Assembly: GCA_002269645.1 (NCBI GenBank)
Contig: NIVC01000946.1
Location: forward strand, 186,001-250,000
Length of the DNA stretch: 64,000 nt
Direction: 5' to 3'
From: Macrostomum lignano
Lineage: Eukaryota
The notes beneath the pieces were generated by a model. It made no database searches. It saw nothing but the letters and a program-made list of their open reading frames with translations, and had not been told where the DNA came from. Below are positions 252-64,000 of the stretch, in pieces. The translations under genes were made by a program, and so were the position numbers. Position 1 is the first letter of the stretch. Each line of letters begins with the position of its first letter.

Positions 252-460
252 CAGCAGCGCAGGTTATTTCGTGGGGGCCGTGCGCACCCAGTCGGGCCGA
301 TTGCAGTGGCTGGACGGCAGCCCAGTGGAGCCGGGCGCATTCTACATGGGCCGGCAGCCCAGCAGCGGCTGCGTCCTGTACTCGATGAAGTACAACGCCC
401 TGGTAGAGACCAGCTGCGGCGGCAGGCAAATGTTTATCTGCCAGGTGGAAAAAGTAGATC
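252..460 (+). CDS. Exon: C-terminal half of a C-type lectin domain
   Basis: acceptor ccatacag|, donor |gtaagt at 461; GRLQWLDGSPV...CVLYS...SCGGRQMFICQ. Confidence 0.8.
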
Positions 461-3400
461 GTAAGTTTCTCTGAAGCCGATTTTCAACCTGTTTAGAGGG
501 CCGAATATATACAGAAATTAAAATATAAATATTGATATATTCCGACCGAAAATAACAAAATACAACTTGAAATGAACAGTTTAGCAGTGTAAATAAACAG
601 AACATGAATGAACAAGACAGAATGAAACATAATCCAATCTTAACAAGTTATCTTTAACGAATTACCGATGATACAACGAATGAGTTTCTAAACGTTGAAT
701 GTCAAGTGGAATGCGTTTAAGGCTTTTAGTAGGCCTACCATTAAATATTGAATCGTAGTTAAAAAGTAACGTCTTTTTTGCAGCCGACAGCGCAGTCTCC
801 ACTCCAGTCGTGTTGTCAGCTGTGTACAACACAGACTTGGGTACAACTGCTCAACGGGACACCTACAGTGGTAACGGAGTCTATGAGCACATGGCCCTGC
901 TCAGTATGGACTCTGAGTACACCAGCGGTGTGCCAGCGGTGCTTGACTGTCAGCAGCCCGACGGTCGTTGCAGTCGAAGCATCTGCGCAGATCCCAGCAT
1001 GAAGGAGTCCGGCACTGCTGATGAGCTGGTTTTCAACTATGTCAACATTAGCGTCGGTAAGCATGCGACTGTAAGACTACAAGAGCTCGTACTACTGCTT
1101 GCCGTATCAGTAGTATTGAGGGATAAATTTTTTGTACTAGCTTCACCTAACTATACCTGCTGAACAGTGGCTCTGTCTGTTACAGCAGCCACACCTGCAA
1201 TACAACAGTTTCACCTGCAACACAGCAGTTTCACCTGCAATACAGTAGTTTCACATGTATTACTGTAGTTTCACATGTATTACAGAAATTTCACATGTAA
1301 TACAGTATTTTCACCTGTAATACAGTAGTTTCACTTGTAATACAGTAGTTTCAACTGTAATACAGCAACTTCACCTGTAATATAGTAGTTTCACCTGTAA
1401 TACAGCAGTTTCAACTGTAATACAGCAACTTCACCTGCAATACAGTAGTTTCACCTGTAATACAGCAGTTTCACCAGAAATACAGCAACTTCACCTGTTG
1501 TACAGCAGATTCATTGGAAATACAGAAAGCCTAATTTTTTAACGGTGATTTTACTTGTTATGCAGTAGCCATTAAATACATTTGACAGTGTTTGCTTTGG
1601 ATTCTTTATCCAGGTTGCCACAATCCCTTGCTGCTGGAGGACCAGGTTCTGATCAAATCATCATCGTTTAACTCTCGTCGCTCGCATAATAACAGTCATA
1701 TTGGCAGCATCATGTCTTCAGATGGTACGCTATTGATACACGCATTTACCACACATTCAACGTTCTGCACTCTGTGACTATCTTTAAACTGCATGAACTT
1801 TTCTCATGATGCGCGCAAAATACCTCCCTTGCAGATTATGTGCAGTGTGTTTTGACTCGAAACGACTTCAATTTTTATCGGTACCCATGGTCCGTGACAA
1901 AACAGGGGGAGGTGTGCAAACCCTGGGCCACCGTCGATGCAACTTACAAAGAGTACAATTCGTCGTGTATTTCTTGTGAGCACCGTTAACATCATTTTAG
2001 GCAGCGCGTTGTCTTACAAAAGCAGTTTTACGGCTATAATATTCTTTAAAAATTCCAGACTCCAGCCTCTACGAGCCACGCTGCTACAACCAAGCTAATA
2101 CTCTTACAGATTGTGTTGACTACACAAACAATTACTGTGGTAATAAATTAGAAAGGAGCCTTCCCCTGTTGCTCCTTCTTGTTCCTTGTAGCCGATTGTT
2201 ACTCTTTCCTGTGTCTTGCAGCCGGTTGTTACTCCTTCCTGTGTCTTGCAGCCGGTTGTTACTCCTTCCTGTGTCCTGTAGCCGATTGTTACTCCTTCCT
2301 GTGTCCTGTAGCCGATTGTTACTCCTTCCTGTGTCTTGCAGCCGGTTGTTACTCCTTCCTGTGTCCTGTAGTCGATTGTTACTCCTTCCTGTGTCCTGTA
2401 GCCGATTGTTACTCCTTCCTGTGTCCTGTAGCCGATTGTTACTCCTTCCTGTGTCCTGTAGCCGATTGTTACTCCTTCCTGTGTCCTGTAGCCGATTGCT
2501 ACTCCTTCCTGTGTCCTGTAGCCGATTGTTACTCCTTCCTGTGTCCTGTAGCCGATTGTTACTCCTTCCTGTGCCCTGTAGCCGATTGTTACTCCTTCCT
2601 GTGTCCTGTAGCCGATTGCTACTCCTTCCTGTGTCCTGTAGCCGATTGTTACTCCTTCCTGTGCCCTGTAGCCGATTGTTACTCCTTCCTGTGTCCTGTA
2701 GCCGATTGTTACTCCTGTCTGTGTCCTGTAGCCGATTTTTACTCCTTCCTGTGTCATGTAGCCGATTGCTACTCCTGCCTGTGTCCTGTAGCCGATTGAA
2801 AATACTAGGACACAGGAAGGAGTAACAGTCTACCTTAAGCGGCTAATTAATTAACTGTGAACTTATTCTTGCTAACCAATGTTCTTCAATTTCACATTCC
2901 AACCCCCAGCTGAGTACTATTACCCACCGCGCTCGGAAAACAACCCTTCAAGCATCCTGAAGGAAGCAAGCGTCCACTTTAACGGCCTGAAATTGACTCC
3001 CAGCATCACAGGAGCCAACGGACTGTACGTGAACACCCAGGCTTACACTGGCAGCGTCCCGCAGCCCCAGACAGTCTGGTGGCTGCTGCTGGATTTGAAG
3101 TTGCAGTACCGGCTGGGACAGATGCGACTCAAGACAGGTGATGCCATCCTAATACTGACTGTCAACTCTGAGTTGTTTACACAGTATTCACTGGACTTTT
3201 GATTGAAATCGTGTAGTTAAAATATTTGGATAGTTTGATTGACTAATAATCGTGTTTAAACTCGAATTGAGTCGCTCGATTTTTTTAATCTAATCAAATA
3301 TTGACTTGACCTGTCATGTTTTGACTTTCAGCCGATGTTTTGAACAACATTAGCGTTAGAACAAGTGACAAGTGGAATGCTGCGCTAAATGAATCGGCCT

Positions 3401-6400
3401 TCGAAAACTGGACCTCCTGCTTTGAGTGGAACTACCCGGAACCGATGCCCAGCTCAACAGACTTCTACGTCACCTGCCACGTGGAGACAGCTGCTCGATA
3501 TTATGTAATCTTGAGGAGCGCAGCCATTGGAACATTGAAGATTAGCTATGTCACTCTGGTTGGAGATGAAGGTGAGATGGCCTGTCATACGGACTAACAG
3601 ATGGAGATAGATAGACAGACATACAGACAGACAACTCTTGTTATAGTTTAAAATCGCTTAATGCAGTATGCATTATTAAGTTGGCAAAAGCAGTCATTGA
3701 CAACCAACGCTCGCTCCCCTCAGTTCCGGAAATCGGTTCCAAGCTGCAAAAGTTCATTCCGTCCAGATTTCCTCGACAATTGATAGCGGAAGCCGTACAG
3801 AACGGCAACCGGATGGAATTTCACCTGCGCATCAGAACCGCTTCCGTGATGCTGTACTTCTCTGAGTTCTACGAGCAGGCGGACATAATGACTGGAGTGA
3901 GTGCTCCTCAGAGTTAGACAGTATATATACAAAAAGTTCCAAGTTACAATTTTGATTCAGGATGACTATTGCGCCATTTATTGCGTTCAGGCGTAATTTT
4001 ACGACGCACTTACTTGACTTAGCTGCAGGGGGTTCCATTCAATGCACAGATATCTAGACTTGAATCATTAATCAATTGGCCACGGGCCATTGGCTTGCAG
4101 TCAGCCTATCTTTTGAAACCAGATTGAAACGTACGGCGGGCCGCCCGCCGAGAATGTCTGTGACTTTGGAGTACCTTGGCCTGCTTAAAGTACGTTTGTG
4201 CATTTCGATTAGGCAAGAAAATCGTGTCTTTTAAGTGATTGCATCAATGTGAAGGTCTGGAAAGTCTGCCAGGCTGATGAAGAACGATTGAAGAGATGGA
4301 TCGTAGTCAATGCAAACTCGAGCGAGTGCTTTTTTCATCGAGAGCACTGAAAAAGCAAAAAAACTATCGTTTCCAAAAGAGTCGTTGAACATATTGACGA
4401 TTCTGAATGCTGACATTTTACATGCATGGCTAAAGAAGAAGGGGTTTTCTCACTTGCGAATCAGTCATTCTGCCTTTATAGATTATATGTACTACTTGGC
4501 TTCCCCGATCCCCTTCCACCAGACCAGGTACGAGGTGGTCATCACCTGTAACGGCAGCCACGCGTTCCTGGCCGCAAATCCGGCCGTTCGTCGTGGCGAC
4601 CTCTTCGGCGCCAATCTGCAGACGCTCGCCGCCCTGGCGGTGTTGGAGTCGGCCCGGCTGCCAGTCCAGTGCGACGACTTCCTGCGCACCTCGACAGCCT
4701 GGAGCGGCGAGCCGCCAGTTCAGGTGGCCATCGAGATCGAAGGACAAACGTTGGCCAGACTGCAAGCACCACTGAACAGCAGTTTGAATGTCAGCAATGT
4801 TGCTTACGTTGGGGTGGACTCTGAGCACCAGGCTGTACTGTTGATTAATAAAACCGGTAAGAATCTCGATTAACTCCTTACTTTCTCATATAGATAATTT
4901 ATGAGAGCTTTAAGCAAGACTGCAGGGTTTTGAGCGCTGAGCAGTCTCGTTTCGCTTGTGTGTTCAAAACAAGCGCTCGATACGGACGCGCACAGGTAAA
5001 CTCAGACATATGTGTATCAACAGCGGCCCTGACTTTCTCGTTGTCAGACCATGTGCTACATACTACTAATGTACATATCATGACAATCCTCAATGATTTT
5101 ACCTTTCAGGCCAAAGAAGCCTAGGATTTTGGAGCCCAGTAACCGCCAATGGGCCTGACAGTGCCAACGGGTTCCGTGAATACATTCAGGTGCGAATGAA
5201 TTTTGCTCAGCGAATCACGAGTGCTTTACCATGGCATTGCAGACAGTCTGAAGTCTAGAAATTTTTCCTTTCGTGGTTGCCATTTACAGGCCAGCTTCCC
5301 GAAGTTTGTCACGGCCTTCATCCTGTCGATGCAGAGCGGCACAGGTAGATTTGATGCTGGCAGCAGCTGGGCATCGAATGTGAAGAAGGTACAGCTGGCC
5401 TACAGTAACAACGGACTGCACTTTGAGCACTACATTCACGTGAGCAGTAGTATAGCTTTATTTTGGGAAATTTATACAATCTACGAGGCAGAATGACGGG
5501 TTCAAGAAGCTGTGCGTTTGCAGTTAGTTGCCTAGAAAAAGACGGTGCTAGAAGCCACAGCCAGGCAATGTACAGTGTGAAATGAGGAGTGAAGATGAAG
5601 AAGGCGAATTTCACTGAGTTCGCTTTTAGCTGTCCTGTTCGCACTTAAAATTCCGTTAAAACCGACAGAAAATCCGCGGCCCATTGGCTGGCGATTTTGT
5701 CACCAGCTACCGCCTGACCCCGGAGGTGACGGCCAAAGCCTATCGCGTTTATATCGTGGATTTTACTAACAGGATCGAGTTTCGCTGGATGCTGTACGGC
5801 TGCTGGAACTGTGAGTTTTTTATTTATTTTATCGTTCAAATTTTCAGCAGAAATGCAGATCTATAATCGAATTTTATCTTCGTTTGTTGTCATGACAACT
5901 TAGCCTAACCAAAGCCCCATACAGAGGGGCCAGCTGACAAACCCAACGTTTCACAAAATTCCAAGAAAGCATTTTATTTCACAAACCCATGGTCTGAAAC
6001 CCAGGCAAAGTAGCTCTCGGAACCTTCAGTTCAGTTCAGTTCAGTTCAGTTCAGTTCAGTTCAGTTCAGTTCAGTTCAGTTCAGTTCAGTTCAGTTCAGT
6101 TCAGTTCAGTTCAGTTCAGTTCAGTTCAGCGAGAAGCTAGAATCGAACCCAATTAACTTTAGCGCAAGAGTCTGACCTGTTACCAAGGTGCTACTTTGCC
6201 TACCTGTTAAGCACTTGAGCTCTGATCAGTAGCTCGACGGAGTTGAAAGCTTTACGTACCTTCTTTGAAAGTTAGAGTTTTTAAAATAAAACCTCTTACC
6301 TTCAAACAGCTTCCTATAATGATTTGAGTCCGCCGCCTCAGCTCATCTCTGGTCATCAGACAGCGGTGAGCTCAACTCCCTACTCAACATACTATGCCAA

Positions 6401-9400
6401 GTATGTGAACGATGGCAACAGGCTGGCGGTGATGTCAGCACCCTGCTGGGTCGGCTCCGGCCTGCGACCATACATTGCAATCGACTTGGAGAGGCCGAGA
6501 TTCGTGCACAGCGTCATTGTTTATTCGCAGTTGGACGATGACAAAGGTGATGCTAGTTGGGAGCAATGCACCACCTGAGGGCTGCTAGACACCAGACTGG
6601 GAGCAATGCACCACCTGAGAGGGCTGCTAGACACCAGACTGGGAGCAATGCACCACCTGAGAGAGGGCTGCTAGACACCAGACTGGGAGCAATGCACCAC
6701 CTGAGAGAGGGCTGCTAGACACCAGACTGGGAGCAATGCACCACCTGAGAGAGGGCTGCTAGACACCAGACTGGGAGCAATTTCGTAGCATCCAAATATT
6801 TATACCAATCGGTCCGTACTTAATATATGACTATTTATAGGTTTCGTCACCAACGACCGGAACAGTAACTCGGCAGTGTACCTGTCTAACAGCAGTGAGA
6901 GTTCAGCGCCTGTAGTAATTGCCAAGACAGACAACACAGTTCCGCCTCAACCTTGGATAATTAAAGCTGATAGGGTATGTTTTATAAATTCGGTAATAAA
7001 TCATGAGGCTAGCTATGTGACAAATTATGATTCCTAAATTTCTGTCCATCATTTTTACAGCCAGCGAGATACGTCGGACTGTTGCGTCACTCAAACGACA
7101 CGGGCTATTTTTCGGTTTGCGAAATAGAAGTTTATGGTTATCCAATTGGTCAGTTAAAAAATAATTTTTGTAACGTAGCGTAATGTATTTCTGCACGCAG
7201 ATGTACTTTTTAATGACGAGCGGTTATTCACTTTTGTAAATACTTGATTTTTGCATGAAAATGGTACTTCTCATAAGGATGTATGCTCGTACTAATTATT
7301 GCTTCAGTACTTTTACTTCGTAACTCAGTTTAATTTTCCATAGCTTGAAGGGGGTTGTAGCCTAGTAGTTAGAGCGTCGGACTCACGACTTGAAGGTCGG
7401 GGTTCGATTCTCGACCCACTCGGGACAATTTGTGTCCTTGAGCAAGACAGTTAACTCTGCATTGCTTCAGTTCACCCAGCTGTAAAATGGGTGCCAGCAA
7501 TAGCTGGGGTAATTGAGGGTGTGTGGCGACCCCCCAGTCCTTGGACTAAACAGCCGTACGCAGCCTTCAGATGCACCGCGCAATAGCTGCGGCTGAGCTG
7601 TCGGTTGCTCATCTGCTCATTAGGGCAGGTGTAATAAATAATAATTATTATTAGCTTGATAGAAATCTCTCGTTTTGAATAAAATTTTAATAATTGTAAT
7701 TTTCACATCTCCAAACTCTTCACCCTTGGACACTCACCAGGCATTCCGCTGCCCCAACCCTCATCCGGCTTGCCCAACACCACCTCTATAGGCTTCCTGA
7801 CCCCACCCCTAGGTTTGCCCCACCCCGCTTCCGGCCTGCCCTCACCCCGCCTCTGGGGCCTCCTCATCGCTGATTGGCTCCCCCTCGCTGATTGGCTCCC
7901 CCTCGCTGATTGGCTCCCCCTCGCTGATTGGCTCCCCCTCGCTGATTGGCTCCCCCTCGCTGATTGGCTCCCCCTCGCTGATTGGCTCCCCCTCGCTGAT
8001 TGGCTCCCCCTCGCTGATTGGCTCCCCTCGCTGATTGGCTCCCCCTCGCTGATTGGCTCCCTTCGCTGATTGGCTCCCTCTCGCTGATTGGCTCCCCCTC
8101 GCTAATTGGCTGGCCAATTTTTGGCAAAGACCGTACCATTTTCCTACTACTGTTATCTCTTACACATTTGTATTTTACATAAATTATATACTTTTATGTC
8201 AGTGCTTTTTGCGCGAATGTGTATAAGTATAGGGATTTTTCTCCTGTACGAGCTAATAATCAGTCAAGATTCAATCTTTATTCACTAAAATCTCTAACTA
8301 ACAAAGCTTTTCCCTGTCCCCCCCAGGCCAACCGGGTGATCAGCTGGCCAGGCTGCTGCACGCGCCAACCCAGTTCGGCCAGCGCTACCCGGTGACCTCG
8401 GCGGTGACCAGTCCCTACCTGAGCAAGTTCAAGTTCTACACTGGCGACGTGTACTCACTGCCGCTGAACCTGCCAGGTAGCGAGGCGTTCTCATTCGCCT
8501 ACTACACCTATAACACGGCGGCTGGCATTAGCGTCTACCTGCCCTGCGTGTTCACCCTGACCGGCTTTGTTGCCATGGGAACCGGACAGCACAAGCCCTA
8601 CTCGGGCCGGTTTACCGGTCTCCGGGTTCGCTACGCCTACGAGAGGAGCGCAAAATTTCTGGATTATTATCGCTACCCTGGCACGGCGACCATTGTGAGC
8701 AGCTGTTTACCGTTAAATTTGCTAAACTCCTACTTTAAGTAGTTTAAACCAAAACTGCTAATTTTCGCAATTCGTTTAAATTTCACACAAACTTCTACAG
8801 GTGGAATTCGACGGCCCAATGGACGAGATGCAGGCGAGGAAGTACTACTTTCAGCGACCGTTCCAGGCTTCCATAGTGGAACTCGAGCCCACGGGCTACT
8901 CGGGTCAGAGGGCCATCAAGCTGGACTTTCTCGGCTACCCAGACGATGGCAGTGAGTGCTGAGTGACAGTCCAAACAAACTGACTTTAATTTCAGACACC
9001 TGAATTTAGTCCAGAGCAGATCACCTGAACAAAAGTTGATAAATCGATTGCAGACAGCACCCAGGTGCCAGGCCAATCGAGCTTCAATGGCAGCGCAGCC
9101 ATCGTGATAAACCTGACAGTGCTGCATCATCTGAGCTACCTGTCTGTGAATCGCAGCGCAGCAGATCATCTTCGATTCACCGTGAGCTACCGGGAGGTGA
9201 CGCTGGAGACCGGCTGGACAGATCTTGTTGTCAATAATTTCACCTGGGTGGTGAGTTTATTTTAGCCTTAGTAAATTGAAGTCTGCTTTTAAATGTGAGC
9301 CATTTTCCCGCCAATTTGAATGCACCATTGTCGTCTACAGAGTTCCCACACAATGTCAATCCTATATACTAAAATATAATCTTAAAAACTAACTTAAAGA

Positions 9401-57400: not shown

Positions 57401-60400
57401 TACCAAAACTACCGCCTGACTGTTGGCAACTGCTCCAGCGCCTTCGGCTCAGATGAAGCAGCTCTGATCGCCTCGCTGAATGGACTCACCTTCAGCGCTT
57501 ACGACTGGGGCGATCAGCGCGTCTGCGCGGCCTCCAGCGGCAGCGCCTGGTGGTTCAAGCCTGACATCGGCTGCTACTCAACTACTAAGCTGACTGGAGA
57601 CAGCGAGCAGCTCGAATGGTCGCCGGAACTGCAGGGCGGACGAGTTTCTATGCGGATGCTGTCCACTGAGAAGGCTGAGCCGGGTAAGGCCGTGTTAAGG
57701 GTATCGGTGCGTTTCAGAGCATTCTCTGTCGCTAAGCTCGTAGCTATCGTAGCCAAGCTCGTAGCTATTGCAGCCAAGCTCGTAGCTATCGTAGCCAAGC
57801 TCGTAGCTATTGCAGCCAAGCTCGTAGCTATCGTAGCCAAGCTCGTAGCTATTGCAGCCAAGCTCGTAGCTATTGCAGCCAAGCTCGTAGCTATCGTAGC
57901 CAAGCTCGTAGCTATTGCAGCCAAGCTCGTAGCTATCGTAGCCAAGCTCGTAGCTATTGCAGCCAAGCTCGTAGCTATCGTAGCCAAGCTCGTAGCTATT
58001 GCAGCCAAGCTCGTAGCTATCGTAGCCAAGCTCGTAGCTATTGCAGCCAAGCTCGTATCTATCGTAACTAAGCTCGTAGCAAAGTTTCCCAAGGACCGTG
58101 TACAAAATTTTAAGCAGACGAACACATTTTGTAATACAGTTATCAAATGATTATCTTAAAGTTTATATGACGTTTGAGTTCCTATCCTGTCAGTGTACAT
58201 GTCAATCAATTCTTAGTGATAGCCCATGCGCCTTTCAAACGTATAGATATAAATATGTAATAAGTAATTAATCACAGTATTTCCAATTGTGTTTTCAGCT
58301 CAAAACTTCAGCGAAACGTGTCAGAGTGACTACAATTGCCTTCATATGAACGATTCAGTGTGCTTGGCTCAAGATGGCACTTACGAGCTCAAATGTGACT
58401 GTTTAGTTGGTTGGATTTTCTCGCGACACGCTTGCAAGCCAAGTAAGCAGTAATGCTTAAATACGAGAATGCAGCAAATTATCCCTACTACAAAATTGTC
58501 ATTCTCCGATTTTAGTTGTCGATGTGCAAGCGCTGAACATTAGTACAGCAGCACCGCTGGCTAACTGGACTCGTCTGTCACAGAGAAACTTCACGCTCAC
58601 CATCTACTTGCTGGTAGCGAATGGCTCGGCCAATATCAGCGAGGCTACAGGTTCGGCCGTGAACTTCAACTTCACTGTCTATCTCTGGAACAATCAGAGC
58701 GCGGCCGCTCCCGCAGCGCTCATGCCAGACTATTGGTTGGCTAAATTTACTTGGCCCATCACCGGCAATCGGCAGGCCGCTAGAAAGCTGGGCGAGACCA
58801 TCGGACTGAGCTTGGGAGCCAGTGTGGTCATGGAGAGCGGCCGGCGGTGCAAGCAGGCCAAGTACTTGTGCATCGCCACGGTTAAATCGCCCACAGCCAA
58901 GTTTGTCGACCAGAACAGCCTGAACGATGCAGGCTGCATTGGCATCGCTAGCGATGTAATCTGTCAGCCGCCTGCGGACACGGAGCTGCTCCAGTTTCAG
59001 CTGAATCAGACGGAGCCCTATATTCGAACTACGCCGTACCGTGTTCCGCTGATTGCACTGGTGCGAACGGTGTCCGCCAGATGGCCAATCGCGCAAGTGC
59101 TGGATGGCGACGAGAATTTTCGGTTTGAGCTGCACTTTAGTGAGCAAAACTGCGCCAAGTCATGGGCGTGTCTCAACGCTAGCTCTGTTTTTAGTAACTT
59201 GACCGAGGGAAATCCTGCGCAGGCCAGTCTGGGCATGGAAGTCAACAGCACATTGGCTGTGCAGCTGGTGGCTCAGTTCAGCTTGGAGTATTGGCGCTGC
59301 GCCAGAGCCAGGTTTGTCTGCCTCTCCGCCTTCAGCGGAGAAAATGCCAGCTACCAGGAGGTCAACCTGGACAACAATGTTGCCTGTCAGCCTGTTGTAC
59401 TGAACTGTGTACCATTTGTTGACACTAGAGCTTCTGGGGTATCGCTAACCCTTGGAAATGAGTCCTGGCTGGCCAGGTATCCTGCCCATTTGAATGTTCG
59501 CGCGAGTCTGCAGCATCTCAGTGGACTGCCAATCGATCAGGTGTTTGGCCCTCAAACAAATTATTTTATTAGCTTTTTCCTCCAATTAAATGACACGGCC
59601 AGTTCTCAAGTTTTGCCAGTGGCAACTGACTGTCAATCAGTCGATTTGAAACAACCGCTGGCTCAAAGCGGAAACGTCAGTTTTGCGTGCTCAATCATAT
59701 TAAATGTCACTATTGAGGAATGCAGAAGTCTATCCAGCTATTGTCTGACATTTAACAGCTCAAAGAATGGCTCTTACACAGAGCTGGACCCGAGCAACAA
59801 CAGATGGTGCGATAGAATTTCCATCCCTATCAATTGCACTGGAGTGCCCATAGAGAATGCTTCGTGTCGCTTGTCGAACAACACACTACTGTCCAGTGTA
59901 CCACTGACTGTCGGTCTCAGCTGGGATGCTGGCTCGGCTGTGCATGCTGAATTGACTTATGGCAATGCTGACAGCTACAGATGGGACTGGCTGACCTACA
60001 ATCACACCGATCACTTTGGAAGGCACTCGGTTGATGCAGTCTATCGCTACTCTGACGACTTTGGCGACATGCCAATCACATGCCGATTCCGGAACGAGTT
60101 GGGCGAAGTTCGCATCAACAGAGTGGTTTCAATAATTGCCGATCTTAACGATTTCTTGTCCGTCGCTCTCTTGTACGAACCAGCAGTGGTACCGCTAAAT
60201 GCTAGCATCGAGTTTCGCTTGCTCAAAGGTTCTAACTACTCCTACATGAGCAATATTACCTGTTGGGTGACACCAGAGCTTCAAACAGATGGAATATTTG
60301 TTACTAGTTTTGCCTTTGGCCGCTTTGATAGAAAATTATTGACGTTTCAGTTTGTTGTCGAGGAGCCGTTCTCAAATATATCCGTGAAATGCTCAAATCA

Positions 60401-63400
60401 GTTTTCCAGCACAATTCGTCCGTTATATGTGAGAAAGCAGATACTCGTTGAGGGCTTCAATGCAACCATATCTAAGCGCCATCTGAAGTCCAATGAGACT
60501 GCCACCGTGATGCTTTTCCTTAGAAACGGCTCGCATGTTTATTACATAATCTACCCAGGCGATGACAGAGTCTTCAACCAAACTGACGGACAAAAGTTGT
60601 CATCAGCAGCTCTGGACTTCCTAGAAATCAGCTATCCAGAGCCTGGTGCGTACAACTTGACGGTTTTTGCAGAGAACTATCACTCGTCTCAGACATCTGT
60701 TGTCGGTGAGATAATCGTGCAGCACGAGCTGACCAATGTGACCCAGACGGCTCCCACTGTAGTATCTACCGCCATCGTGAACTTCACTGTTGACCTGCTC
60801 TTCAACCAAATACCTTCTCCGACGAACGTTACCTGCAAGATTATATTTGGGACCAGCAGTCCTATAGTGGTTCATTTCGGTAATCAGTCAGAAAAATCTG
60901 TTGCTTTAGCCTGCAGAGCGGATCTGATTGGCCCGCCAATGCTCTTGCATTCTAACTGCTTTAATCTAGTGTCAAACCAGTCAGTGCAAAGCGAAGTGAG
61001 TTGTCAAGAACCAATCAGTGGCTTGCAGGTCTTTGGAGACTTGGTACACGAAAGAGGCCGACCGATTATAATGAATGCCACTGTAGCTTCAGGCTCGCAT
61101 TTGATTGGAACTTTTTTCTATGGTTTTGGTGACCTAAGGGACACCATACGAGCCTCTTCCCTAACAGACAAGAAGTTAGTGGCTAATTTTACATATGACA
61201 CAGTTGGCAACTACACGGCTACTGTTGTGCTGCGAAACGAGCTTGGAGAGCGGAACTCAACTCTGGGCCCGATAGTGGTTCTGGACCGGTTGTCGGAGTT
61301 GATGTTGGACTACAACAGCACCGTGGTTTACCCGACCGCCCCGCTCAGGGTGTGCCTCAGCCACGGGAGCAACAATGCCACGAATGTCTTCTGTGTGATT
61401 CGATTGAGTTCATTTTATCTCCAGCAAAAATACACCGATGTGCTGGGCCCCACCAATCCGCTGTGTTTTTCCACCAATCTACAAAGGGAGGCAATTGGAA
61501 ATCACAGCATTGAAGTAAACTGCTCCAATCTACTATCTCGGATTCATGAAGTCAGACTGATTACGGTTGAGCTCGATGCTGTGATTATTCAAAGCTTTCG
61601 CACTAACGGCAGCGTGCTCACATTCAATGCCAGCACATTTATTATAAAAATCGCCCGCTTCGGTACGTACGGCTGCTTTGCGGTAAACTTTGGCGACTCG
61701 ACGCCAGGTATGTGCTTCGGGGTAGCGCATCTGTGCCAGCCGTACGCTACCAGCAAAGGAATGAACTTTACCGAGATCACCTACTCAACTAATCTGGTTG
61801 TATTTGAGCATCTGTATTCTACACATGGAGCTTTCTCGGCACAATTGTATGCTTTTAATCACGTGAGCAACGATACAGCAGAGACTTTGGCATTGGTACT
61901 AGATCGCTACTGCTTTGAACCGCTTCTAAATTTTACACATAACGACACACGTATCGTTCCTTTCGATGTGGAAAACGCCCTGGAGATTCGCAGATCTGTT
62001 GATCTGTTAGTAAAATTAGAGCTGGAGTTGAATTGCACAAAGACAGACGTTATCTCAGGTATCTGGTGGATTGACACCTATCCGGAGCTGAGGCCCCTCG
62101 GACTGGCCCTGCCAGATTCTGTGGAGATGCGCCTGCAAAAGCGCAGTCTGCCTTATGGCCTGTACAGAGTCAGTCTCAACCTGAGCATGGTCGCTGTGCA
62201 ACCCGCCGTATCCGTGCAGCGTCAATTCTTTCTACGCATCGTTCCAACGCCAGTTCAGGTGGAACAGATTGGCGCACCAGCTCAAGTTGAATACGACCAG
62301 TTGGTGACGCTGACAGCGTCGCAGTATACCCACGATTACGACGTTGAGCCTGGCAACCTGACCGGCTTTCATTTTGTTTGGATGTGCCTGCAGCTGAGCG
62401 AGAACTCCAGCGCACCGTTTAATTTGACTAACTTTGTGTCGCCTCCTGCTAGCCAGGGTGTCAATAATTATAGAGGCTGCTATGGCAACGGATACGGTAT
62501 AGTGCTACAAGGTGACAGTGAGACAGCTGGAAATCTCACACTGAGTACCTACCACACCATGCCAAATGCAACATACCTGTTTAGACTGTTTGTTTATAAA
62601 GGATCGCGTTGGGACCTCAAAGAGATGGTTCTGTACGTTCGAACTCAGAAGGCTCCCGTGTTTGATATTAGGTAAAGGCATTTTTCGTTCTTTTCAAGCA
62701 TTTTTTAAATTGCATTTGACATTAAACTAACCATAAACCATGCCAAATGGCTCTCTCTAGTTGCGTTTCCAACTGCAACAGAAAGATCAGCTCAGAAGTT
62801 GATCTAGTCTACCAAGTTGATTGTCGACAATATTGCGGGCAAAAGTTCCAACCGCTGCAGTACTTGTGGCAGATGTACCAAGCAAATGTATCGGTACTTC
62901 GCATGGATGATCTGTCAGTCGTCAGCGGGAGCGGTAAGCTGGAGCACTTTCCCGGCACCTATCTGACTTTTTTCTGATTCTAAACACTCAAACGTAAGCC
63001 CAGATGCCCATAATATCCACCACTTTAGAAGGCTTCAGATCCGCCAGCTTCACTCGCAGAGCCAATACTCTGCCAAAGGCGAGCTACTATATTCTGAAGG
63101 TGACGTGCAGCAACTTCAGGCAGGAGGGTCCGGTTACACGTGAGCAAAGACTAATCGTGAACAGCCCGCCCTACGGAGGCAAGTGCGATGTAGCGCCACG
63201 CAACGGCACTGCCATGTCAACGAAGTTCCAAATAAGCTGCTGGGACTGGAAGGAGTTCGACATCGAGCTGGGCGGGATTCGCTACGAGTTTAAAATCCGC
63301 GAGCCTGGCAGCCGGCGAAAAATCCCGCTATTCTTTGGCAAAGTCTCCACTTCGCCGCGCATATTTTTCCCGCTAGGCAGCCCCAGCGCCAACTTACCGC

Positions 63401-63765
63401 TCTTGTGTCTGCGCTACTCATTGACTCGCTGGGTGACTCACAGAAATACGAGTTTCCTGTCACGGTACGTCTTAGAAGAATTTCAGAGAGTTTCAGTTTC
63501 CTTGCCACCCGCTGTACACAGACTGTTGCACCCTTTCTAGGTTTTACCCCCGCCAGTTTCTGTGGAAGTTCTCTCTGACAACATCTCTGACATTCTGACT
63601 GGCAGAAGCGAAGAGCTCACGAAATATTTCCAACTTAACGACCAACAAGGAGCCGCGTCGACAATGCTGTGCCTGGTGTCGCTAATGAACGTTGATTCCA
63701 AATACTTTCTAGGCGAGAATGCCACGGCCGAGGATGCCCAGTCAGCGATCAAGCGTATGACAGAA
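252..63765 (+). CDS. Giant multi-exon polycystin-1/REJ-family (PKD1-like) receptor ectodomain, partial at both ends; ~65 exons, ~6,000 aa in window
   Basis: GC-rich coding-like blocks bounded by AG/GT whose intron phases chain consistently across the window (weak junctions near 4442, 7149-8326, 18122-18641). Recognisable CTLD, kringle, FTP, F5/8C, LamG, FReD, EGF, PKD and REJ motifs occur in order. No start codon, TM segment or stop is seen in the window. Confidence 0.85.
784..1056 (+). CDS. Exon: Cys-containing linker module after CTLD (possibly PAN-like)
   Basis: ttttgcag| 784, |gtaagc 1057, phase 1-1; LDCQQPDGRCSRSIC. Confidence 0.6.
1186..1512. repeat. 20-bp minisatellite
   Basis: tacagtagtttcacctgtaa variants, ~16 copies. 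Confidence 0.9.
1614..2139 (+). CDS. Three exons (1614-1724, 1835-1975, 2059-2139): discoidin-like start plus divergent kringle
   Basis: all phase 1; GCHNPLLLED, GEVCKPW, EPRCY...DC; paralogous to 13879-14882. Confidence 0.6.
2168..2800. repeat. 30-bp minisatellite
   Basis: gccgattgttactccttcctgtgtcctgta, ~21 copies. Confidence 0.95.
2910..3571 (+). CDS. Two exons (2910-3137, 3332-3571): fucolectin/FTP-like jelly-roll domain
   Basis: WWLLLDLK...; C...ARYYVIL; 228 and 240 nt, phase 1; paralogous to 15123-15691. Confidence 0.65.
3724..4856 (+). CDS. Two exons (3724-3896, ~4442-4856): unassigned ~190-aa module
   Basis: open frames with GT-AG ends. The start at 4442 is inferred from phase and from alignment of FSHLRISH with FVGARIEH at 16299; that acceptor is weak. 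Confidence 0.5.
5110..5810 (+). CDS. Three exons (5110-5189, 5290-5439, 5669-5810): F5/8 type C (discoidin) domain
   Basis: FWSP...EYIQ|ASF; VKKVQLAYSNNG; PEVTAKAYRVY...FRWMLYGC. Confidence 0.8.
6026..6129. repeat. (TTCAG)n microsatellite
   Basis: ~20 perfect copies. Confidence 0.98.
6310..7148 (+). CDS. Three exons (6310-6546, 6841-6974, 7061-7148): FTP/fucolectin-like domain
   Basis: AVSST...AKYVNDGN, PYIAIDLERPRFVHSVIVY, ARYVGL...SVCEIEVYG; phases 1,1,0,1. Confidence 0.8.
6557..6781. repeat. ~42-46-bp minisatellite
   Basis: ctgggagcaatgcaccacctga(ga)nggctgctagacaccaga, 5 copies. Confidence 0.95.
7350..7652 (+). mobile_element. tRNA-derived SINE with CORE-like central domain
   Basis: A box tagcctagtagttagagc (7358) and B box ggttcgattc (7401), then gtgtccttgagcaagacagttaac...ctgtaaaatggg, then an AT-rich tail; second copy at 23720. 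Confidence 0.8.
7866..8113. repeat. 18-bp minisatellite containing CCAAT on the minus strand
   Basis: cgctgattggctccccct, ~14 copies. Confidence 0.95.
8327..8951 (+). CDS. Two exons (8327-8694, 8801-8951): divergent F5/8 type C domain
   Basis: VRYAYE; RPFQASIVELEPTGYSGQRAIKLDFLGYP; strong |gtgagc and |gtgagt donors. Confidence 0.75.
9054..11127 (+). CDS. Three exons (9054-9250, 10216-10517, 10907-11127): degenerate discoidin-like module then C-type lectin domain
   Basis: CPLGFVPHFDVCFRL...WAEALAHCQS; GWQWLDGDP...WVLDQP...FACQ; phase-2 junction 10517/10907 restores the frame. Confidence 0.8.
9430..10110. repeat. 10/11-bp minisatellite
   Basis: cacacagatc(c) variants. Confidence 0.95.
10571..10827. 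repeat. 20-bp minisatellite
   Basis: gtgaatgtctgagcttctat. Confidence 0.95.
11155..11350. repeat. 22-bp minisatellite
   Basis: ggggagctgtacattatccaat. Confidence 0.95.
11386..11664 (+). CDS. Exon: unassigned Cys-containing module following CTLD
   Basis: ctcccag| and |gtcagt, 279 nt, phase 1-1. Confidence 0.6.
11680..13713. repeat. 20-bp minisatellite, ~100 copies
   Basis: gtcacagcactaatacaggt. Confidence 0.98.
13879..14882 (+). CDS. Three exons (13879-14001, 14585-14722, 14808-14882): discoidin-like start plus kringle
   Basis: DCMQPLL; LNVTEAGVACLPW...SYC; PECY...C; all phase 1. Confidence 0.7.
14010..14450. repeat. 28-bp minisatellite
   Basis: tcagtagcactcagcaactctcctacaa. Confidence 0.95.
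15123..15691 (+). CDS. Two exons (15123-15350, 15455-15691): FTP-like domain, paralog of 2910-3571
   Basis: YYLLIDLKIEHTI; EWNA..GEEAFNDWALC; C...GRYLAV; first exon is the same 228 nt as its paralog. Confidence 0.7.
15952..17281 (+). CDS. Four exons (15952-16118, 16299-16670, 16901-17059, 17140-17281): unassigned module plus F5/8 type C domain
   Basis: VYVQ|VSF..LMWITVQG...YVYSYVLYFSETGNYW; LRLQLYGCP; phases match 3724-5810. Confidence 0.75.
17882..18121 (+). CDS. Exon: first half of an FTP domain
   Basis: AGRGNDGS...YWMVDLGQFTYITFIRV; 240 nt, phase 1-1. Confidence 0.8.
18642..18935 (+). CDS. Exon: complete kringle domain
   Basis: C...YYGMQNVTANGIPCQNW...NYCRD...GCYTTDPAVPYASC; tctcaacag| and |gtgagc, 294 nt, phase 1-1. 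Confidence 0.9.
19409..19747 (+). other. Intronic 112-aa acidic ORF ending FSGSFQNCTFQF; possible Crypton/DUF3504-type remnant
   Basis: only the C-terminal motif and acidic composition support this; no recombinase motifs seen. Confidence 0.2.
20134..20524. mobile_element. Foldback MITE: 154-bp TIRs, 83-bp spacer, 8-bp TSD; P-superfamily-like ends
   Basis: arms 20134-20287 and 20371-20524 are reverse complements with 1 mismatch; gctacggg duplicated at 20126-20133 and 20525-20532; ends CATGG...CCATG. Confidence 0.85.
21004..21878 (-). CDS. Nested antisense 3-exon gene (21878-21825, 21705-21379, 21279-21004): 218-aa putative secreted protein with two 6-Cys repeats
   Basis: ATG at 21878 gives MRGYLSLFLLIAVG (signal-peptide-like). 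Exons are 54, 327 and 276 nt, all phase 0, with donors gtgagt and gttcgc and acceptors ggtcag and cttcag. TGA at 21004. Confidence 0.75.
21993..22177 (-). promoter_or_regulatory. Putative core promoter of the nested gene
   Basis: TATAAATA on the minus strand at 22000-21993, ~115 nt upstream of the ATG; agCCAATca at 22177-22173. Confidence 0.5.
22833..23144 (+). CDS. Two exons (22833-22966, 23054-23144): second half of the FTP domain begun at 17882
   Basis: AEIILAN; ARFAGV...LSFAEFEVYG; 134 and 91 nt vs 134 and 88 nt in the paralog at 6841-7148. Confidence 0.75.
23163..23440. repeat. 16-bp minisatellite
   Basis: agactgagtattccgt. Confidence 0.95.
23515..24827 (+). CDS. Three exons (23515-23700, 24089-24282, 24683-24827): F5/8 type C domain
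   Basis: PVGLEDGAV; ISGLVTQGGG...YVTEFQLLYGDD; PILAKLVRFVP...ALRLEILGY. Confidence 0.9.
23720..24000 (+). mobile_element. Second copy of the same SINE with the B-box region deleted
   Basis: near-identical body (gtgtccttgagcaagacagttaactctg...gctgagctgtcggttgc) to 7350-7652. Confidence 0.8.
24903..24966 (+). mobile_element. hAT-like terminal fragment
   Basis: caggtgcaggcgaactccggcccgtgggccacat...ccggccc resembles hAT non-autonomous 5' ends; related caggggtcggcaaactacggcccg at 26728. Confidence 0.45.
25028..26140. repeat. ~1.1 kb polypyrimidine (CT/CTT/CTCTT) low-complexity tract
   Basis: essentially only C and T on + strand from ~25030 to ~26050. Confidence 0.98.
26507..27106 (+). CDS. Two exons (26507-26709, 26971-27106): degenerate discoidin-like module
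   Basis: DCPVVP...; SIRGC; paralogous to 9054 and 40652 blocks. Confidence 0.65.
26728..26752 (+). mobile_element. hAT-like terminal fragment
   Basis: caggggtcggcaaactacggcccg followed by CT-rich sequence. Confidence 0.45.
27280..28128. repeat. 16-bp minisatellite inside a dispersed repeat (copy 1)
   Basis: gagagtgtacatgcct, ~52 copies; shared flanks with 35958 array. Confidence 0.98.
28322..29286 (+). CDS. Two exons (28322-28538, ~28995-29286): C-type lectin domain
   Basis: CPFGFFRHKFSCF; WEWWDGSPVTWSFW...C...WNNIQC...FLCE; phase-2 junction. Confidence 0.85.
28655..28950. repeat. 32-bp minisatellite
   Basis: cccaatgacctaccatcctaccattaaatgca. Confidence 0.95.
29295..29790. repeat. 14-bp minisatellite
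   Basis: ctcacaaacagcac variants. Confidence 0.95.
29826..30732 (+). CDS. Two exons (29826-30015, 30508-30732): FTP/fucolectin-like domain
   Basis: AANDGDF...WWRVQL...RSD; C...YTCDWFGRFLTV...SEILVY. Confidence 0.8.
30748..30955. repeat. 39-bp minisatellite
   Basis: tagattagcaatccactttgcttattcattcatctaggc, ~5 copies. Confidence 0.9.
31008..31909 (+). CDS. Two exons (31008-31274, 31787-31909): PAN/apple-like module and linker
   Basis: C-x6-C...C spacing (RFCDQQLPAACAS...DCLL) resembling 43701 exon; GT-AG, phase 1. Confidence 0.5.
31280..31545. repeat. ~20-bp degenerate minisatellite
   Basis: ggaatcccctgctatg core. Confidence 0.9.
32017..33490. repeat. 21-bp minisatellite, ~70 copies
   Basis: atctcccagcggggatctctt. 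Confidence 0.98.
33524..35935 (+). CDS. Two exons (33524-34106, 35814-35935): LamG/pentraxin-like (concanavalin-A fold) domain
   Basis: VAVWPLD...FGP...TLCMYFYV...WRFVCITVD..GRLQI; LLFG...CVQLYKMAFT; phase-2 junction. Confidence 0.7.
34600..35480 (+). mobile_element. Degenerate, internally deleted RTE-clade LINE
   Basis: frameshifted APE motifs (VGTLNC, YDVIELQE, GVGMLI, CDHRLL) followed almost directly by post-RT motifs (SLLYNVETWTLT, SNAAL, RRLQL); no RT core seen. Confidence 0.7.
35958..36556. repeat. 16-bp minisatellite inside a dispersed repeat (copy 2)
   Basis: same unit and same 3' flank gacgattagaaagtcagggcc. Confidence 0.98.
36763..37281 (+). CDS. Exon: linker plus kringle-like domain
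   Basis: FAGKFCTQSGGRDACFPW...SAYDAGNNCR...C; 519 nt, phase 1-1. Confidence 0.7.
37370..37470. repeat. 20-bp minisatellite
   Basis: ctggtccttcattagcccaa, 5 copies. Confidence 0.9.
37578..39704 (+). CDS. Two exons (37578-37804, 39071-39704): two F5/8 type C domains
   Basis: WRAGSTDPDEWLQ...YYLLYSDD; PPIQAMYIRLY...KLELFG; VMSVVTAG...FELLYS...LRFGLLGY. Confidence 0.85.
37858..39037. repeat. 19-bp minisatellite
   Basis: gtcacacattcctgtctgt. Confidence 0.98.
39738..40480. repeat. 38-bp minisatellite (followed by a 40-bp triplet at 40527-40635)
   Basis: cacctgactgtcaagctgatatctgtcagactgcctgt. Confidence 0.97.
40652..41106 (+). CDS. Two exons (40652-40869, 40962-41106): degenerate discoidin-like module
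   Basis: ECPAVP...; VTAHSAVIRF...QLHFYGCP. Confidence 0.7.
41190..41830. repeat. 15-bp minisatellite
   Basis: accaaaaccccggac. Confidence 0.95.
41966..42921 (+). CDS. Two exons (41966-42158, 42680-42921): C-type lectin domain
   Basis: CPVNFYYLNGRCI...EYC; WQHWKAAEP..NC...W...C...ICE; phase-2 junction. Confidence 0.8.
42375..42620. repeat. 16-bp degenerate minisatellite
   Basis: cataaactcacaatcc. Confidence 0.85.
42990..43500. repeat. 16-bp minisatellite
   Basis: gggatttgagattcat. Confidence 0.95.
43701..43979 (+). CDS. Exon: PAN/apple-like module
   Basis: RCS...AIKACQYAGRATCSSI...CF...LC; ctcggcag| and |gtgagg. Confidence 0.55.
44056..46897. repeat. 32-bp satellite, left block (~88 units)
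   Basis: aattctgtagctaatgatctaattgacgaagg; resumes at 50953-50983 and 54506-55270. Confidence 0.98.
47560..48520. repeat. 24-bp satellite within Helitron copy 1
   Basis: gattattgcacttgataaaccaag family. Confidence 0.95.
48895..49620. repeat. 22-23-bp satellite within Helitron copy 1
   Basis: aatcatagaagcgtcatgtaaac. Confidence 0.95.
50563..50602 (+). repeat. Interstitial telomeric-type (TTAGGG)n
   Basis: six units, one variant ttcggg. Confidence 0.85.
50984..54505 (+). mobile_element. Second, 3'-truncated copy of the Helitron with a doubled 5' end
   Basis: tcccatatactaaaaatg at 50984 and tccatatactaaaaatgg at 51023; 51023-51700 closely matches 46898-47575; no terminal hairpin found. Confidence 0.65.
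51700..53775. repeat. 24-bp satellite within Helitron copy 2
   Basis: same family, about twice as long as in copy 1. Confidence 0.95.
54506..55270. repeat. 32-bp satellite, right block
   Basis: same unit as 44056-46897. Confidence 0.98.
55309..56229 (+). CDS. Three exons (55309-55457, 55701-55862, 56079-56229): F5/8 type C domain
   Basis: QQLE|ITF..AVTLMG...MTVYYSD; RYIYASKLIISP...MKIDLW; phases 1,0,0,1. Confidence 0.7.
56730..57683 (+). CDS. Two exons (56730-57006, 57349-57683): fibrinogen C-terminal (FReD) domain
   Basis: RSWSAYQNGF...FWLGHE...LRVD; FRI...YRLTVG...NGLTFSAYD...AWWF..C. Confidence 0.85.
57725..58085. repeat. 21-bp minisatellite with two alternating variants
   Basis: gccaagctcgtagctatcgta / gccaagctcgtagctattgca. 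Confidence 0.95.
58299..58442 (+). CDS. Exon: EGF/EB-like module
   Basis: TCQSDYNC...SVC...KCDCLVGW...C; 144 nt, phase 1-1. Confidence 0.75.
58516..62671 (+). CDS. 4.16 kb exon: three Cys-rich modules, several PKD repeats and start of REJ domain
   Basis: uninterrupted 1383-aa ORF. PKD motifs YPGDD...SYPEPGAYNLTVFAEN, YGFGD...YDTVGNYTATVVLRN, VNFGD...HLYSTHGAFSAQLYAFN. REJ-like LPYGLYRVSL and FHFVWMC. Very dense N-x-S/T sequons. Confidence 0.9.
62761..63765 (+). CDS. Three exons (62761-62933, 63029-63464, 63541-63765): REJ domain, with an apparent 1-nt frameshift near 63395
   Basis: CVSNC..K, NSPPYGGKCDVAPRNGTAMSTKFQISCWDW, and (shifted frame) IDSLGD...FPVT|VLPP. Confidence 0.8.
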
Positions 63766-64000
63766 GTAAGACATACGAGTAGAAAGTATTGATCCTTTAA
63801 CAGGTTTTTCCCTAGCTGAATCTGTGCGCCAGTCTGTCCCTAGTCTGTGCCCTAGACGGCTGGCAGAGCGTCTTGCATGCTGCATGCAGATTAGCACAAA
63901 AAATAACTCAGCAATGTCAAAGTTCGGGCGAGAACGGCATGTACTTAGGAAGATACTCTAGGCATCTTAGCTTTCATAGGATGCGCGCACATTTGTAACA

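Follow-up and report, generated by a model that had tools for sequence, protein, structure and literature searches.

The window analysed here is a 64-kb stretch of eukaryotic genomic DNA (64,000 nucleotides of Macrostomum lignano contig NIVC01000946.1, positions 186,001 to 250,000), and one very large gene nearly fills it. Judged from the encoded protein, this gene specifies a receptor of the polycystin-1/REJ family. It is open at both window ends: it enters in phase 2, in the middle of a C-type lectin-like domain (CTLD), and is cut again within a REJ domain, in agreement with an earlier sequence-only reading that had called the gene incomplete on both sides. We consider it probable that the window holds the middle ~64 kb of a single gene for such a receptor, with a mosaic ectodomain and, beyond the window, a channel-like membrane region.

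The gene model was built with a splice-aware dynamic-programming parser that uses generic donor and acceptor (GT/AG) matrices, keeps full account of phase and split codons, and takes its codon log-odds solely from the long open reading frame (ORF) 58524-62672 in the 4.2-kb exon. The best plus-strand parse comprised 56 phase-compatible exons (16,978 nt, 252-63765), with G or A at donor position +3, A at +4 in 50 of 55 donors, G at +5 in 48 of 55, and CAG at 50 of 55 acceptors. When bases 1-58000 were parsed as a control, leaving out the training exon, the plus strand scored 386 (53 exons) compared with 33.5 for the minus strand (14 exons) and 6-8 for block shuffles, so that the exon chain is far beyond chance. 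The gene is real and correctly located: the end points 252 and 63765 and the borders 43979 and 58516 of the sequence-only reading were recovered independently. That reading had treated 43979-58516 as empty, and here the picture changed, with exons found within 55309-57683 and an EGF-like exon at 58299-58442.

Curation consisted of exon-by-exon comparison of repeated parts of the gene and of homologues, together with a retrained parse. It added 1835-1975 (half of a kringle-like module, 'CKPW'), 17140-17281 (which completes an F5/8C domain), 17882-18121, 23054-23144 (picked out from the reading frames, 'FAEFEVYGYP'), the EGF-like exon and the REJ exon 62761-62933, the last also covered by tblastn of several homologues; two exons were extended, 23526-23700 to 23515-23700 and 63060-63432 to 63029-63432. 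A self-retrained gene finder proved over-fitted, splitting the 4.2-kb exon and losing the true exons 6841-6974 and 7061-7148, and only those of its novelties backed by paralogy were kept. No more missed exons were found by a paralogue-based search. The final model has 61 plus-strand exons (17,746 nt, 5,915 codons, 252-63765), no stop and GT-AG borders throughout, with a median exon of 209 nt and a median intron of 388 nt, close to the roughly 65 exons and ~18 kb first proposed. Donors read GTRAG in 45 of 61 cases and acceptors CAG in 53 of 61 (tallied on a model one base-edit short of the final one), and 19 of the 61 exons are of phase 1-1. A strong preference for GTGAG is visible among the donors. 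The 5,915-aa product carries 129 N-glycosylation sequons and 147 cysteines, and no transmembrane (TM)-like stretch was seen along its length.

BLASTP of the product against itself reveals paralogy at 23-37% identity, which resolves into a ~1,200-aa super-module present in two recognisable copies and a third, variant copy. Since paralogue identity is this low, the repetition reads as ancient and not as a recent assembly duplication. Super-modules 1 and 2 share one plan: CTLD, cysteine-containing module, kringle-like module, beta modules, two F5/8C domains, CTLD. The modules at 784-1975 are paralogous to 11386-14722 in both sequence and phase, the region 2910-4856 matches its paralogue 15123-16118 at E 2.7e-11 (BLASTP), and F5/8C sequence in 37578-43979 is 37% identical to F5/8C domain 4 (E 1e-15, BLASTP). 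Behind the super-modules lies a core of F5/8C, fibrinogen-related domain (FReD), EGF-like module, three Ig-like repeats, six to seven PKD repeats and REJ. By their sequences, the ectodomain's ~35 adhesion and lectin-type modules are all of extracellular type. Along the window the features are as follows.

252-460, +: C-type lectin domain 1, C-terminal half (Pfam Lectin_C 16.9 bits, profile 41-106; paralogous to CTLD-3)
784-1056, +: cysteine-containing ~90-aa 'PAN-like' module 1 (no Pfam match; no PAN support from hhalign)
1614-1724 and 1835-1975, +: truncated kringle-like module 1 with 'CKPW' core (no Pfam match)
2910-3137 and 3332-3571, +: beta-rich 'FTP-like a' module 1 (no Pfam or PDB match)
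3724-3896 and 4523-4856, +: module X1 (no Pfam or PDB match)
5243-5810, +: F5/8C domain 1
6310-6546, 6841-6974 and 7061-7148, +: discoidin-like 'FTP-like b' module 1 (neuropilin b1 E 0.006)
8327-8951, +: F5/8C domain 2 (5243-8951 as a whole: Pfam F5_F8_type_C 15.8 bits, F5_F8_type_C_2 16.5 bits)
9054-9250 and start of 10216-10517, +: module Y1
rest of 10216-10517 and 10907-11127, +: C-type lectin domain 2 (Lectin_C 21.1 bits; phmmer to CTLDs of the annelid Dimorphilus gyrociliatus E 8e-8)
11386-17281, +: second super-module, paralogous to super-module 1
11386-11664, +: PAN-like module 2
13879-14001 and 14585-14722, +: truncated kringle-like module 2
15123-15691, +: FTP-like a module 2
15952-16670, +: module X2
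16901-17059 and 17140-17281, +: F5/8C domain 3 (Pfam F5_F8_type_C 16.9 bits; exon 17140-17281 from the retrained parse)
17882-18121, 22833-22966 and 23054-23144, +: discoidin-like 'FTP-like b' module 2, interrupted by a kringle exon
18642-18935, +: complete kringle exon, phase 1-1 (Pfam Kringle 36.1 bits, cut-off 34.3)
23515-24827, +: F5/8C domain 4 (Pfam F5_F8_type_C 23 bits)
26507-27106, +: module Y2
28322-28538 and 28998-29286, +: C-type lectin domain 3 (Lectin_C 33.2 bits, above cut-off)
29826-30732, +: FTP-like b module 3, opening the third, variant super-module (29826-37281)
31008-31274, +: PAN-like module 3
33524-34106 and 34644-34747, +: possible ConA/LamG-like module (Laminin_G_3 E 0.09)
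36763-37281, +: segment of no named family and kringle-like module 4 (kringle profile to PDB kringles E 4e-14)
37578-37804 and 39071-39704, +: F5/8C domains 5 and 6 (F5_F8_type_C 24.8 bits in 37578-43979)
40652-41106, +: module Y3
41975-42158 and 42695-42921, +: C-type lectin domain 4 (Lectin_C 15.2 bits)
43701-43979, +: PAN-like module 4
43980-55308, no strand: 11.3-kb AT-rich intron, mostly duplicated satellite arrays (Tandem Repeats Finder; GC 35-41%)
55309-55457, 55701-55862 and 56079-56229, +: F5/8C domain 7
56730-57006 and 57349-57683, +: fibrinogen-related domain (Pfam Fibrinogen_C 62.8 bits)
58299-58442, +: EGF-like exon (cysteine pattern alone)
58516-59858, +: three ~150-aa four-cysteine Ig-like repeats at the start of a 4,156-nt exon (no Pfam family)
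59850-61901, +: six to seven PKD repeats (Pfam PKD 49.4 bits)
62022-63765, +: REJ domain, incomplete (end of exon 58516-62671, then 62761-62933, 63029-63432 and 63541-63765)

Assignment to the polycystin-1/REJ family, proposed from the start together with a very large, lectin-fold-rich mosaic ectodomain, is upheld by the REJ domain, the PKD repeats and the nearest relatives, which agree with one another. The PKD repeats match Pfam PF00801, and local jackhmmer finds six of them at aa 4708-5391, with a seventh likely in the gap between those detected. The REJ match to PF02010, 112.7 bits in two stretches without exon 62761-62933, rises to 158.5 bits in one stretch with it (E 2.8e-46, profile positions 3-386 of 452), and is cut by the window end. 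Ahead of the PKD repeats, the first 447 aa of the big exon consist of the three four-cysteine repeats, recognised as internal repeats and conserved in Macrostomum and Dimorphilus homologues, and possibly representing a repeat family of the polycystin stalk that has yet to be described. AlphaFold2 with a seven-sequence alignment models them at a pLDDT of 76, and Foldseek ranks integrin alpha leg domains (Ig-like) on top at E 6e-9; because the TM-score is just ~0.25 despite this E-value, the model suggests a generic beta-sandwich stalk.

When the last 1,200 aa of the product were searched exhaustively with HMMER, 310 proteins matched, the named ones being polycystin-1-like, PKD1L2 or PKDREJ-like. 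A word-indexed search with the 1,383-aa exon returned nothing at E 1e-5, using an index that also missed Dimorphilus protein P0012 when given 2,500 aa of P0012 itself. The nearest match (41% identity) is one of two adjacent ORFs, P0001/P0072 (MEE4247216.1, MEE4247217.1), on a 4.9-kb contig filed as the metagenome-assembled genome (MAG) of a Kangiellaceae bacterium; the two ORFs together match the intron-less 4.2-kb exon, and the contig is probably mis-binned animal DNA. Among the relatives with a name, proteins of the flatworm Macrostomum lignano rank best (26-28% identity), and further ones come from Dimorphilus gyrociliatus, Branchiostoma (polycystin-1-like), Argopecten (PKD1L2) and Haliotis (PKDREJ-like).

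Among the PKD/REJ proteins of Macrostomum (A0A267F6B5; A0A1I8JK18 / A0A1I8JIH8), A0A1I8JK18 (P0153) aligns with the window protein in one BLASTP high-scoring segment pair over FReD-EGF-Ig-like-PKD-REJ, up to the window edge (E 1e-147), and runs on into PLAT, Polycystin_dom and PKD_channel. These database models are 5'-truncated, without a start methionine, and hence uninformative on the upstream lectin array. Two Dimorphilus giants reach further: DgyrCDS14777 (CAD5126713.1, 5,543 aa, P0004), whose N-terminus is a methionine followed by a hydrophobic, signal-peptide-like leader, and DgyrCDS14438 (CAD5126282.1, 6,071 aa, P0012). Both resemble the window protein in giant size and in repeated blocks of F5/8C, CTLD and PAN, and both are collinear with it by BLASTP, P0012 aa 1615-1931 with 23515-29286 and P0012 again from F5/8C domain 7 on. 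Their last block runs CTLD - PAN - F5/8C - FReD - discoidin/F-type - EGF-like - four-Cys repeats - PKD - REJ and continues into PLAT and Polycystin_dom, with PKD_channel in P0012 and not detected in P0004. They differ from the window protein in that identity is 21-26%, no kringle was detected in them, a discoidin/F-type domain is added after the FReD, and Pfam or a motif clearly identifies PAN and F-type ('RKDCC') domains, at whose positions the window protein has unrecognisable modules. Both are uncharacterised predictions.

The earlier remark that this architecture belongs to no described gene thus needs correction: it is not unique, given that the same module order occurs in two annotated Dimorphilus proteins and the FReD-EGF-Ig-like-PKD-REJ core in Macrostomum. 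The design is a conserved, uncharacterised spiralian variant of a known family, neither a one-off nor a new kind of system. Peculiar to the lineage of the window are its kringles, of which one is encoded by a phase 1-1 exon within a beta-sandwich module, and the strong divergence that many modules show.

From these homologues, the gene would be expected to complete REJ downstream and to follow it with a GAIN/GPS cleavage site, TM1, PLAT, ten more TM helices and a polycystin/TRP-like channel-homology region; its upstream part would be expected to hold a signal peptide together with the first half, or more, of CTLD-1. A single gene could instead encode a product that is not an 11-TM channel-coupled protein, being either of the 1-2-TM REJ type (sea-urchin REJ1/REJ2) or an adhesive matrix protein that is shed or secreted. 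The PKD1/REJ family does have CTLD-bearing 1-2-TM members (PMC1934368), and the window shows nothing beyond REJ profile position 386; however, all scanned close full-length relatives (P0002, P0153, P0004, P0012) show PLAT and Polycystin_dom following REJ, PKD_channel was found as well in each of them except P0004, and P0153 is collinear right to the window edge, which leaves such a product rather improbable. By Pfam, Macrostomum P0002 and P0153 each carry REJ, PLAT, Polycystin_dom and PKD_channel, and GPS is found among the homologues solely in the mollusc relative P0038.

Whether the lectin part and the PKD/REJ part are one gene turns on the 11.3-kb intron between the cysteine module after CTLD-4 (43701-43979) and F5/8C domain 7. 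The splice sites at this junction are strong and phase 1 matches on both sides; no first-exon candidate with an ATG, a hydrophobic stretch and a GTRAG phase-1 donor was found inside the intron; and the order of CTLD, PAN-position module, F5/8C and FReD across it is identical to that in both Dimorphilus proteins. One gene across the 43979-58516 gap is very likely, above all because both Dimorphilus giants carry this order in one protein, and also because the phases match and the intron offers no first exon. The claim that one transcript joins the two parts is therefore favoured by comparative architecture.

The competing reading has two neighbours on the same strand, a secreted multi-lectin/discoidin mosaic ending near 43979 and a polycystin-1-like gene (F5/8C-FReD-EGF-PKD-REJ) whose first exons would lie within or just after the satellite-rich 11.3 kb, the phase-1 match being a coincidence expected about once in three, and more often in mosaic genes with many 1-1 exons. 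The gap is indeed long, 11.3 kb where introns have a median of 388 nt, and its base composition is different; phase 1-1 exons are frequent enough to make phase matching weak evidence; multi-lectin mosaics without REJ exist, such as Branchiostoma proteins with F5/8C, CTLD and kringle; and the Macrostomum models start at or just before the FReD. Against this, exon 43701-43979 ends at a strong GTGAG donor without a stop, exon 55309 opens mid-protein at a strong CAG acceptor, the gap yielded no first exon with an ATG and a signal-peptide-like stretch, CTLD-PAN stands immediately ahead of F5/8C-FReD within one protein in both Dimorphilus giants, and the Macrostomum models, having no start methionine, are truncated. 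We therefore regard two genes as unlikely, and one gene remains our preferred reading. Within the intron, satellite arrays of 32-mers occupy 44054-46899 and 54508-55270, and arrays of 24-mers occupy 47565-48517 and 51704-53775; a unique unit spanning 46939-47212 is repeated at 51078-51351, and a short interstitial TTAGGG x6.7 run is present at 50563-50602.

The individual modules were then compared with profiles. All four CTLDs claimed from the letters are supported (Lectin_C 15.2-33.2 bits), with CTLD-3 above the Pfam cut-off, and in hhalign a profile built from three of the four pairs with that of the Dimorphilus CTLDs at 89.6% probability. Seven of the many F5/8C modules first called hold up: each scores 13-25 bits, below the Pfam cut-off of 28.2 (a multi-domain piece reaches 31.7 bits), and jointly their profile matches the Dimorphilus F5/8C profile at 96.9% (E 1.7e-10, hhalign). 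The FReD is secure (Fibrinogen_C 62.8 bits, E 5.4e-17, profile 40-177 of 221), with homologous FReDs at the same position in Macrostomum and Dimorphilus, and the EGF module stands on its cysteine pattern. Four kringle-like modules had been listed; the one at 18642-18935 is clear and a second is found in 36763-37281, whereas the two two-exon modules are truncated and keep just the G..C.PW core (hhalign 26%). A profile of all four matches the kringles of HGF and plasminogen at E 4e-14, most of it driven by 18642-18935.

The exon of this clear kringle sits in an intron that splits the discoidin-like module 17882-23144, and the paralogous modules 6310-7148 and 29826-30732 have no kringle at the corresponding place. 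Either exon shuffling inserted one domain into another here, or the kringle is a cassette exon.

Other labels fared less well. The three FTP-like b modules show marginal discoidin-type matches only (F5_F8_type_C_2 16.5 bits; neuropilin b1 E 0.006), and the two FTP-like a modules have no match in Pfam or in a PDB profile search, so that of the roughly five FTP-like modules proposed three are weak discoidin-type matches and two remain without any; against the Dimorphilus F-type-like domain hhalign gives <2%, and the DCC motif is absent. The PAN label was lost as well: the modules have no Pfam match at E<=1 and <1% in hhalign against Dimorphilus PAN, the sole point in its favour being position, in that each CTLD is followed by a cysteine-containing module of ~90 aa at the place of the Dimorphilus PAN. 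For the LamG label the match is marginal (Laminin_G_3 13.3 bits, E 0.09; no match for the exon in PDB phmmer or profile searches), and a single-sequence AlphaFold2 model, though all-beta, is unusable at a pLDDT of 33. Against every profile tried, hhalign stays <3% for the PAN, FTP a/b, X, Y and LamG modules, and transitive jackhmmer from Dimorphilus PAN, F-type and CTLD seeds gave no window match at a conservative database size.

The Ca2+- and sugar-binding signature of Drickamer-type carbohydrate-recognition domains is EPN or QPD plus WND, and the fucose-binding motif of F-type lectins is of the H...RxDCCxER type. At the EPN/QPD and WND positions the translation reads QPS/VET in CTLD-1, QPG/none in CTLD-2, YPG/WNN in CTLD-3 and EPA/WTG in CTLD-4; none of the four keeps both motifs intact. 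Because these canonical sugar-binding residues are absent from the CTLDs, the label 'glycan-binding' attached earlier is unsupported by the sequence, and sugar binding is to be treated as an unproven assumption; the FTP-like modules likewise lack the F-type DCC motif that is present in the Dimorphilus homologues.

Such degenerate lectin motifs, together with many domains so diverged that they fall below Pfam cut-offs, could suggest a relic or pseudogene, or an exon-like chain that no longer gives a functional transcript. This is contradicted by 5,915 codons free of stops and frameshifts with all splice sites intact, by structural cysteines kept in the kringle, the EGF module and the Ig-like repeats, and by paralogous modules that have diverged to 23-37% identity yet stay open; we consider decay of the gene very improbable.

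Several observations weigh against the reading of one gene for one channel-coupled receptor. GPS, PLAT and the TM region lie outside the window, beyond base 64000. The junction 43979-55309 rests on phase and on the architecture of distant species at ~21-26% identity, the phase match being weak with 19 of 61 exons of phase 1-1, and the 5'-truncated Macrostomum models are silent on the upstream lectin modules. The sugar-binding motifs are degenerate in all four CTLDs, and no fold is verified for roughly one module in three (FTP-like a, X, Y, PAN-like, LamG-like). A few exon borders set by paralogy (e.g. 23054-23144, 23515-23700) could be off by a few codons, and the model may lack some small exons.

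Described PKD1-family proteins have few lectin-type modules at most (PMC1934368, PMC11448475), and full-text searches turned up no paper describing a REJ protein that carries arrays of discoidin, kringle and FReD modules. Human polycystin-1 is the paradigm receptor subunit of a TRPP channel complex (PMC1934368, PMC11448475); like the window gene, human PKD1 and PKD1L2/PKD1L3 combine PKD repeats and REJ with N-terminal lectin-type modules (one CTLD, WSC, SUEL in PKD1L2). PKD1 differs in its total length of 4,303 aa and in its make-up of LRR, WSC, one CTLD, LDL-A and 16 PKD repeats, and lacks F5/8C, kringle, FReD and repeated super-modules, whereas the ectodomain part in the window alone amounts to 5,915 aa. 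In the sea urchin, SpREJ1-10 are PKD1-family members defined by REJ, with CTLDs in SpREJ1-3, EGF in SpREJ1 and SUEL in SpREJ3, and REJ proteins act in sperm recognition of egg-jelly glycans (PMC1934368); these have few lectin modules at most, the largest gene has 52 exons, and no discoidin, kringle or FReD array is reported. Two spiralian PKD1-like genes have tested functions with PKD2-like partners in ciliated mechanosensory neurons: planarian pkd1L-2/pkd2L-1 act in ciliated rheosensory neurons (PMC11448475), and Platynereis PKD1-1/PKD2-1 are necessary for a hydrodynamic startle response (PMC6294549). No giant lectin array is described for pkd1L-2 or PKD1-1 in these two papers, and their likeness to the window gene is at family level, orthology not being established.

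Because planarian, Platynereis and sea-urchin family members act in this way, a sensory or gamete-surface receptor is the likely role of the window gene. Ciliated sensory cells or sperm would carry the protein in their membrane, where a PKD2-like (TRPP) channel subunit would be its partner; from homologues only, we infer coupling to a channel complex. The long, N-glycosylated, disulfide-rich ectodomain could reach out to matrix, mucus or the surface of another cell as a multivalent tether or as an arm that captures ligands, and ligand binding or mechanical load would be passed through the PKD/REJ stalk to the channel.

In a broader and more tentative view, which we put forward as a possibility, the gene belongs to a conserved, undescribed spiralian clade of giant polycystin-1-like receptors with a core of F5/8C-FReD-EGF-three four-Cys Ig-like-PKD-REJ-11TM, to which lineage-specific arrays of lectin-fold super-modules are added, kringles having been recruited here, one of them shuffled into a beta-sandwich module. 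If so, receptors of this kind could act in ciliated sensory cells as the 'tether' that a mechano- or chemosensor of polycystin type has outside the cell, and would offer a tractable system for asking what the polycystin-1 ectodomain binds. To our knowledge, the ligands of polycystin-1-type ectodomains and their effect on TRPP gating or tuning are not settled even for human PKD1. Invertebrate models (Macrostomum, Dimorphilus, planarians, Platynereis) already provide RNA interference or CRISPR and behavioural assays of PKD-dependent mechanosensation. An ectodomain of ~35 modules, conserved from flatworm-like animals to annelids, would show how far that of polycystin-1 can elaborate.

The gene also illustrates a hazard of annotation. 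With 61 or more small exons, minisatellite-filled introns and sub-cut-off domains, such genes are easily fragmented, and they can be mis-binned as bacterial, the top match here being filed under a Kangiellaceae MAG. Similar giant predicted proteins are already present, unstudied, in annelid and flatworm databases.

As to the make-up of the window itself, minisatellite arrays occupy 22.4 kb (35%; Tandem Repeats Finder), with periods in the introns of 14-191 bp; they make up 49% of intron sequence and do not overlap the final exons at all. GC content is 46-58% across most of the window and falls to 35-41% at ~44-56 kb. No tRNA genes and no Rfam matches were found in the window. On the minus strand, a 3.9-kb intron holds two adjacent, paralogous cysteine-containing ORFs, 21007-21348 (114 aa, 'DCQCD..C..KC') and 21352-21750 (133 aa, 'DRCSCD..C..GC'), neither with a Pfam match; the pair (21007-21750) may represent a nested gene or what is left of a repeat. 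A 16-bp minisatellite, GAGAGTGTACATGCCT, with ~125 bp of unique flank, occurs as copies in two introns (27283-28250 and 35964-36683), in the same orientation and at 97.6-100% identity, and looks like a recently mobile or gene-converted minisatellite element.

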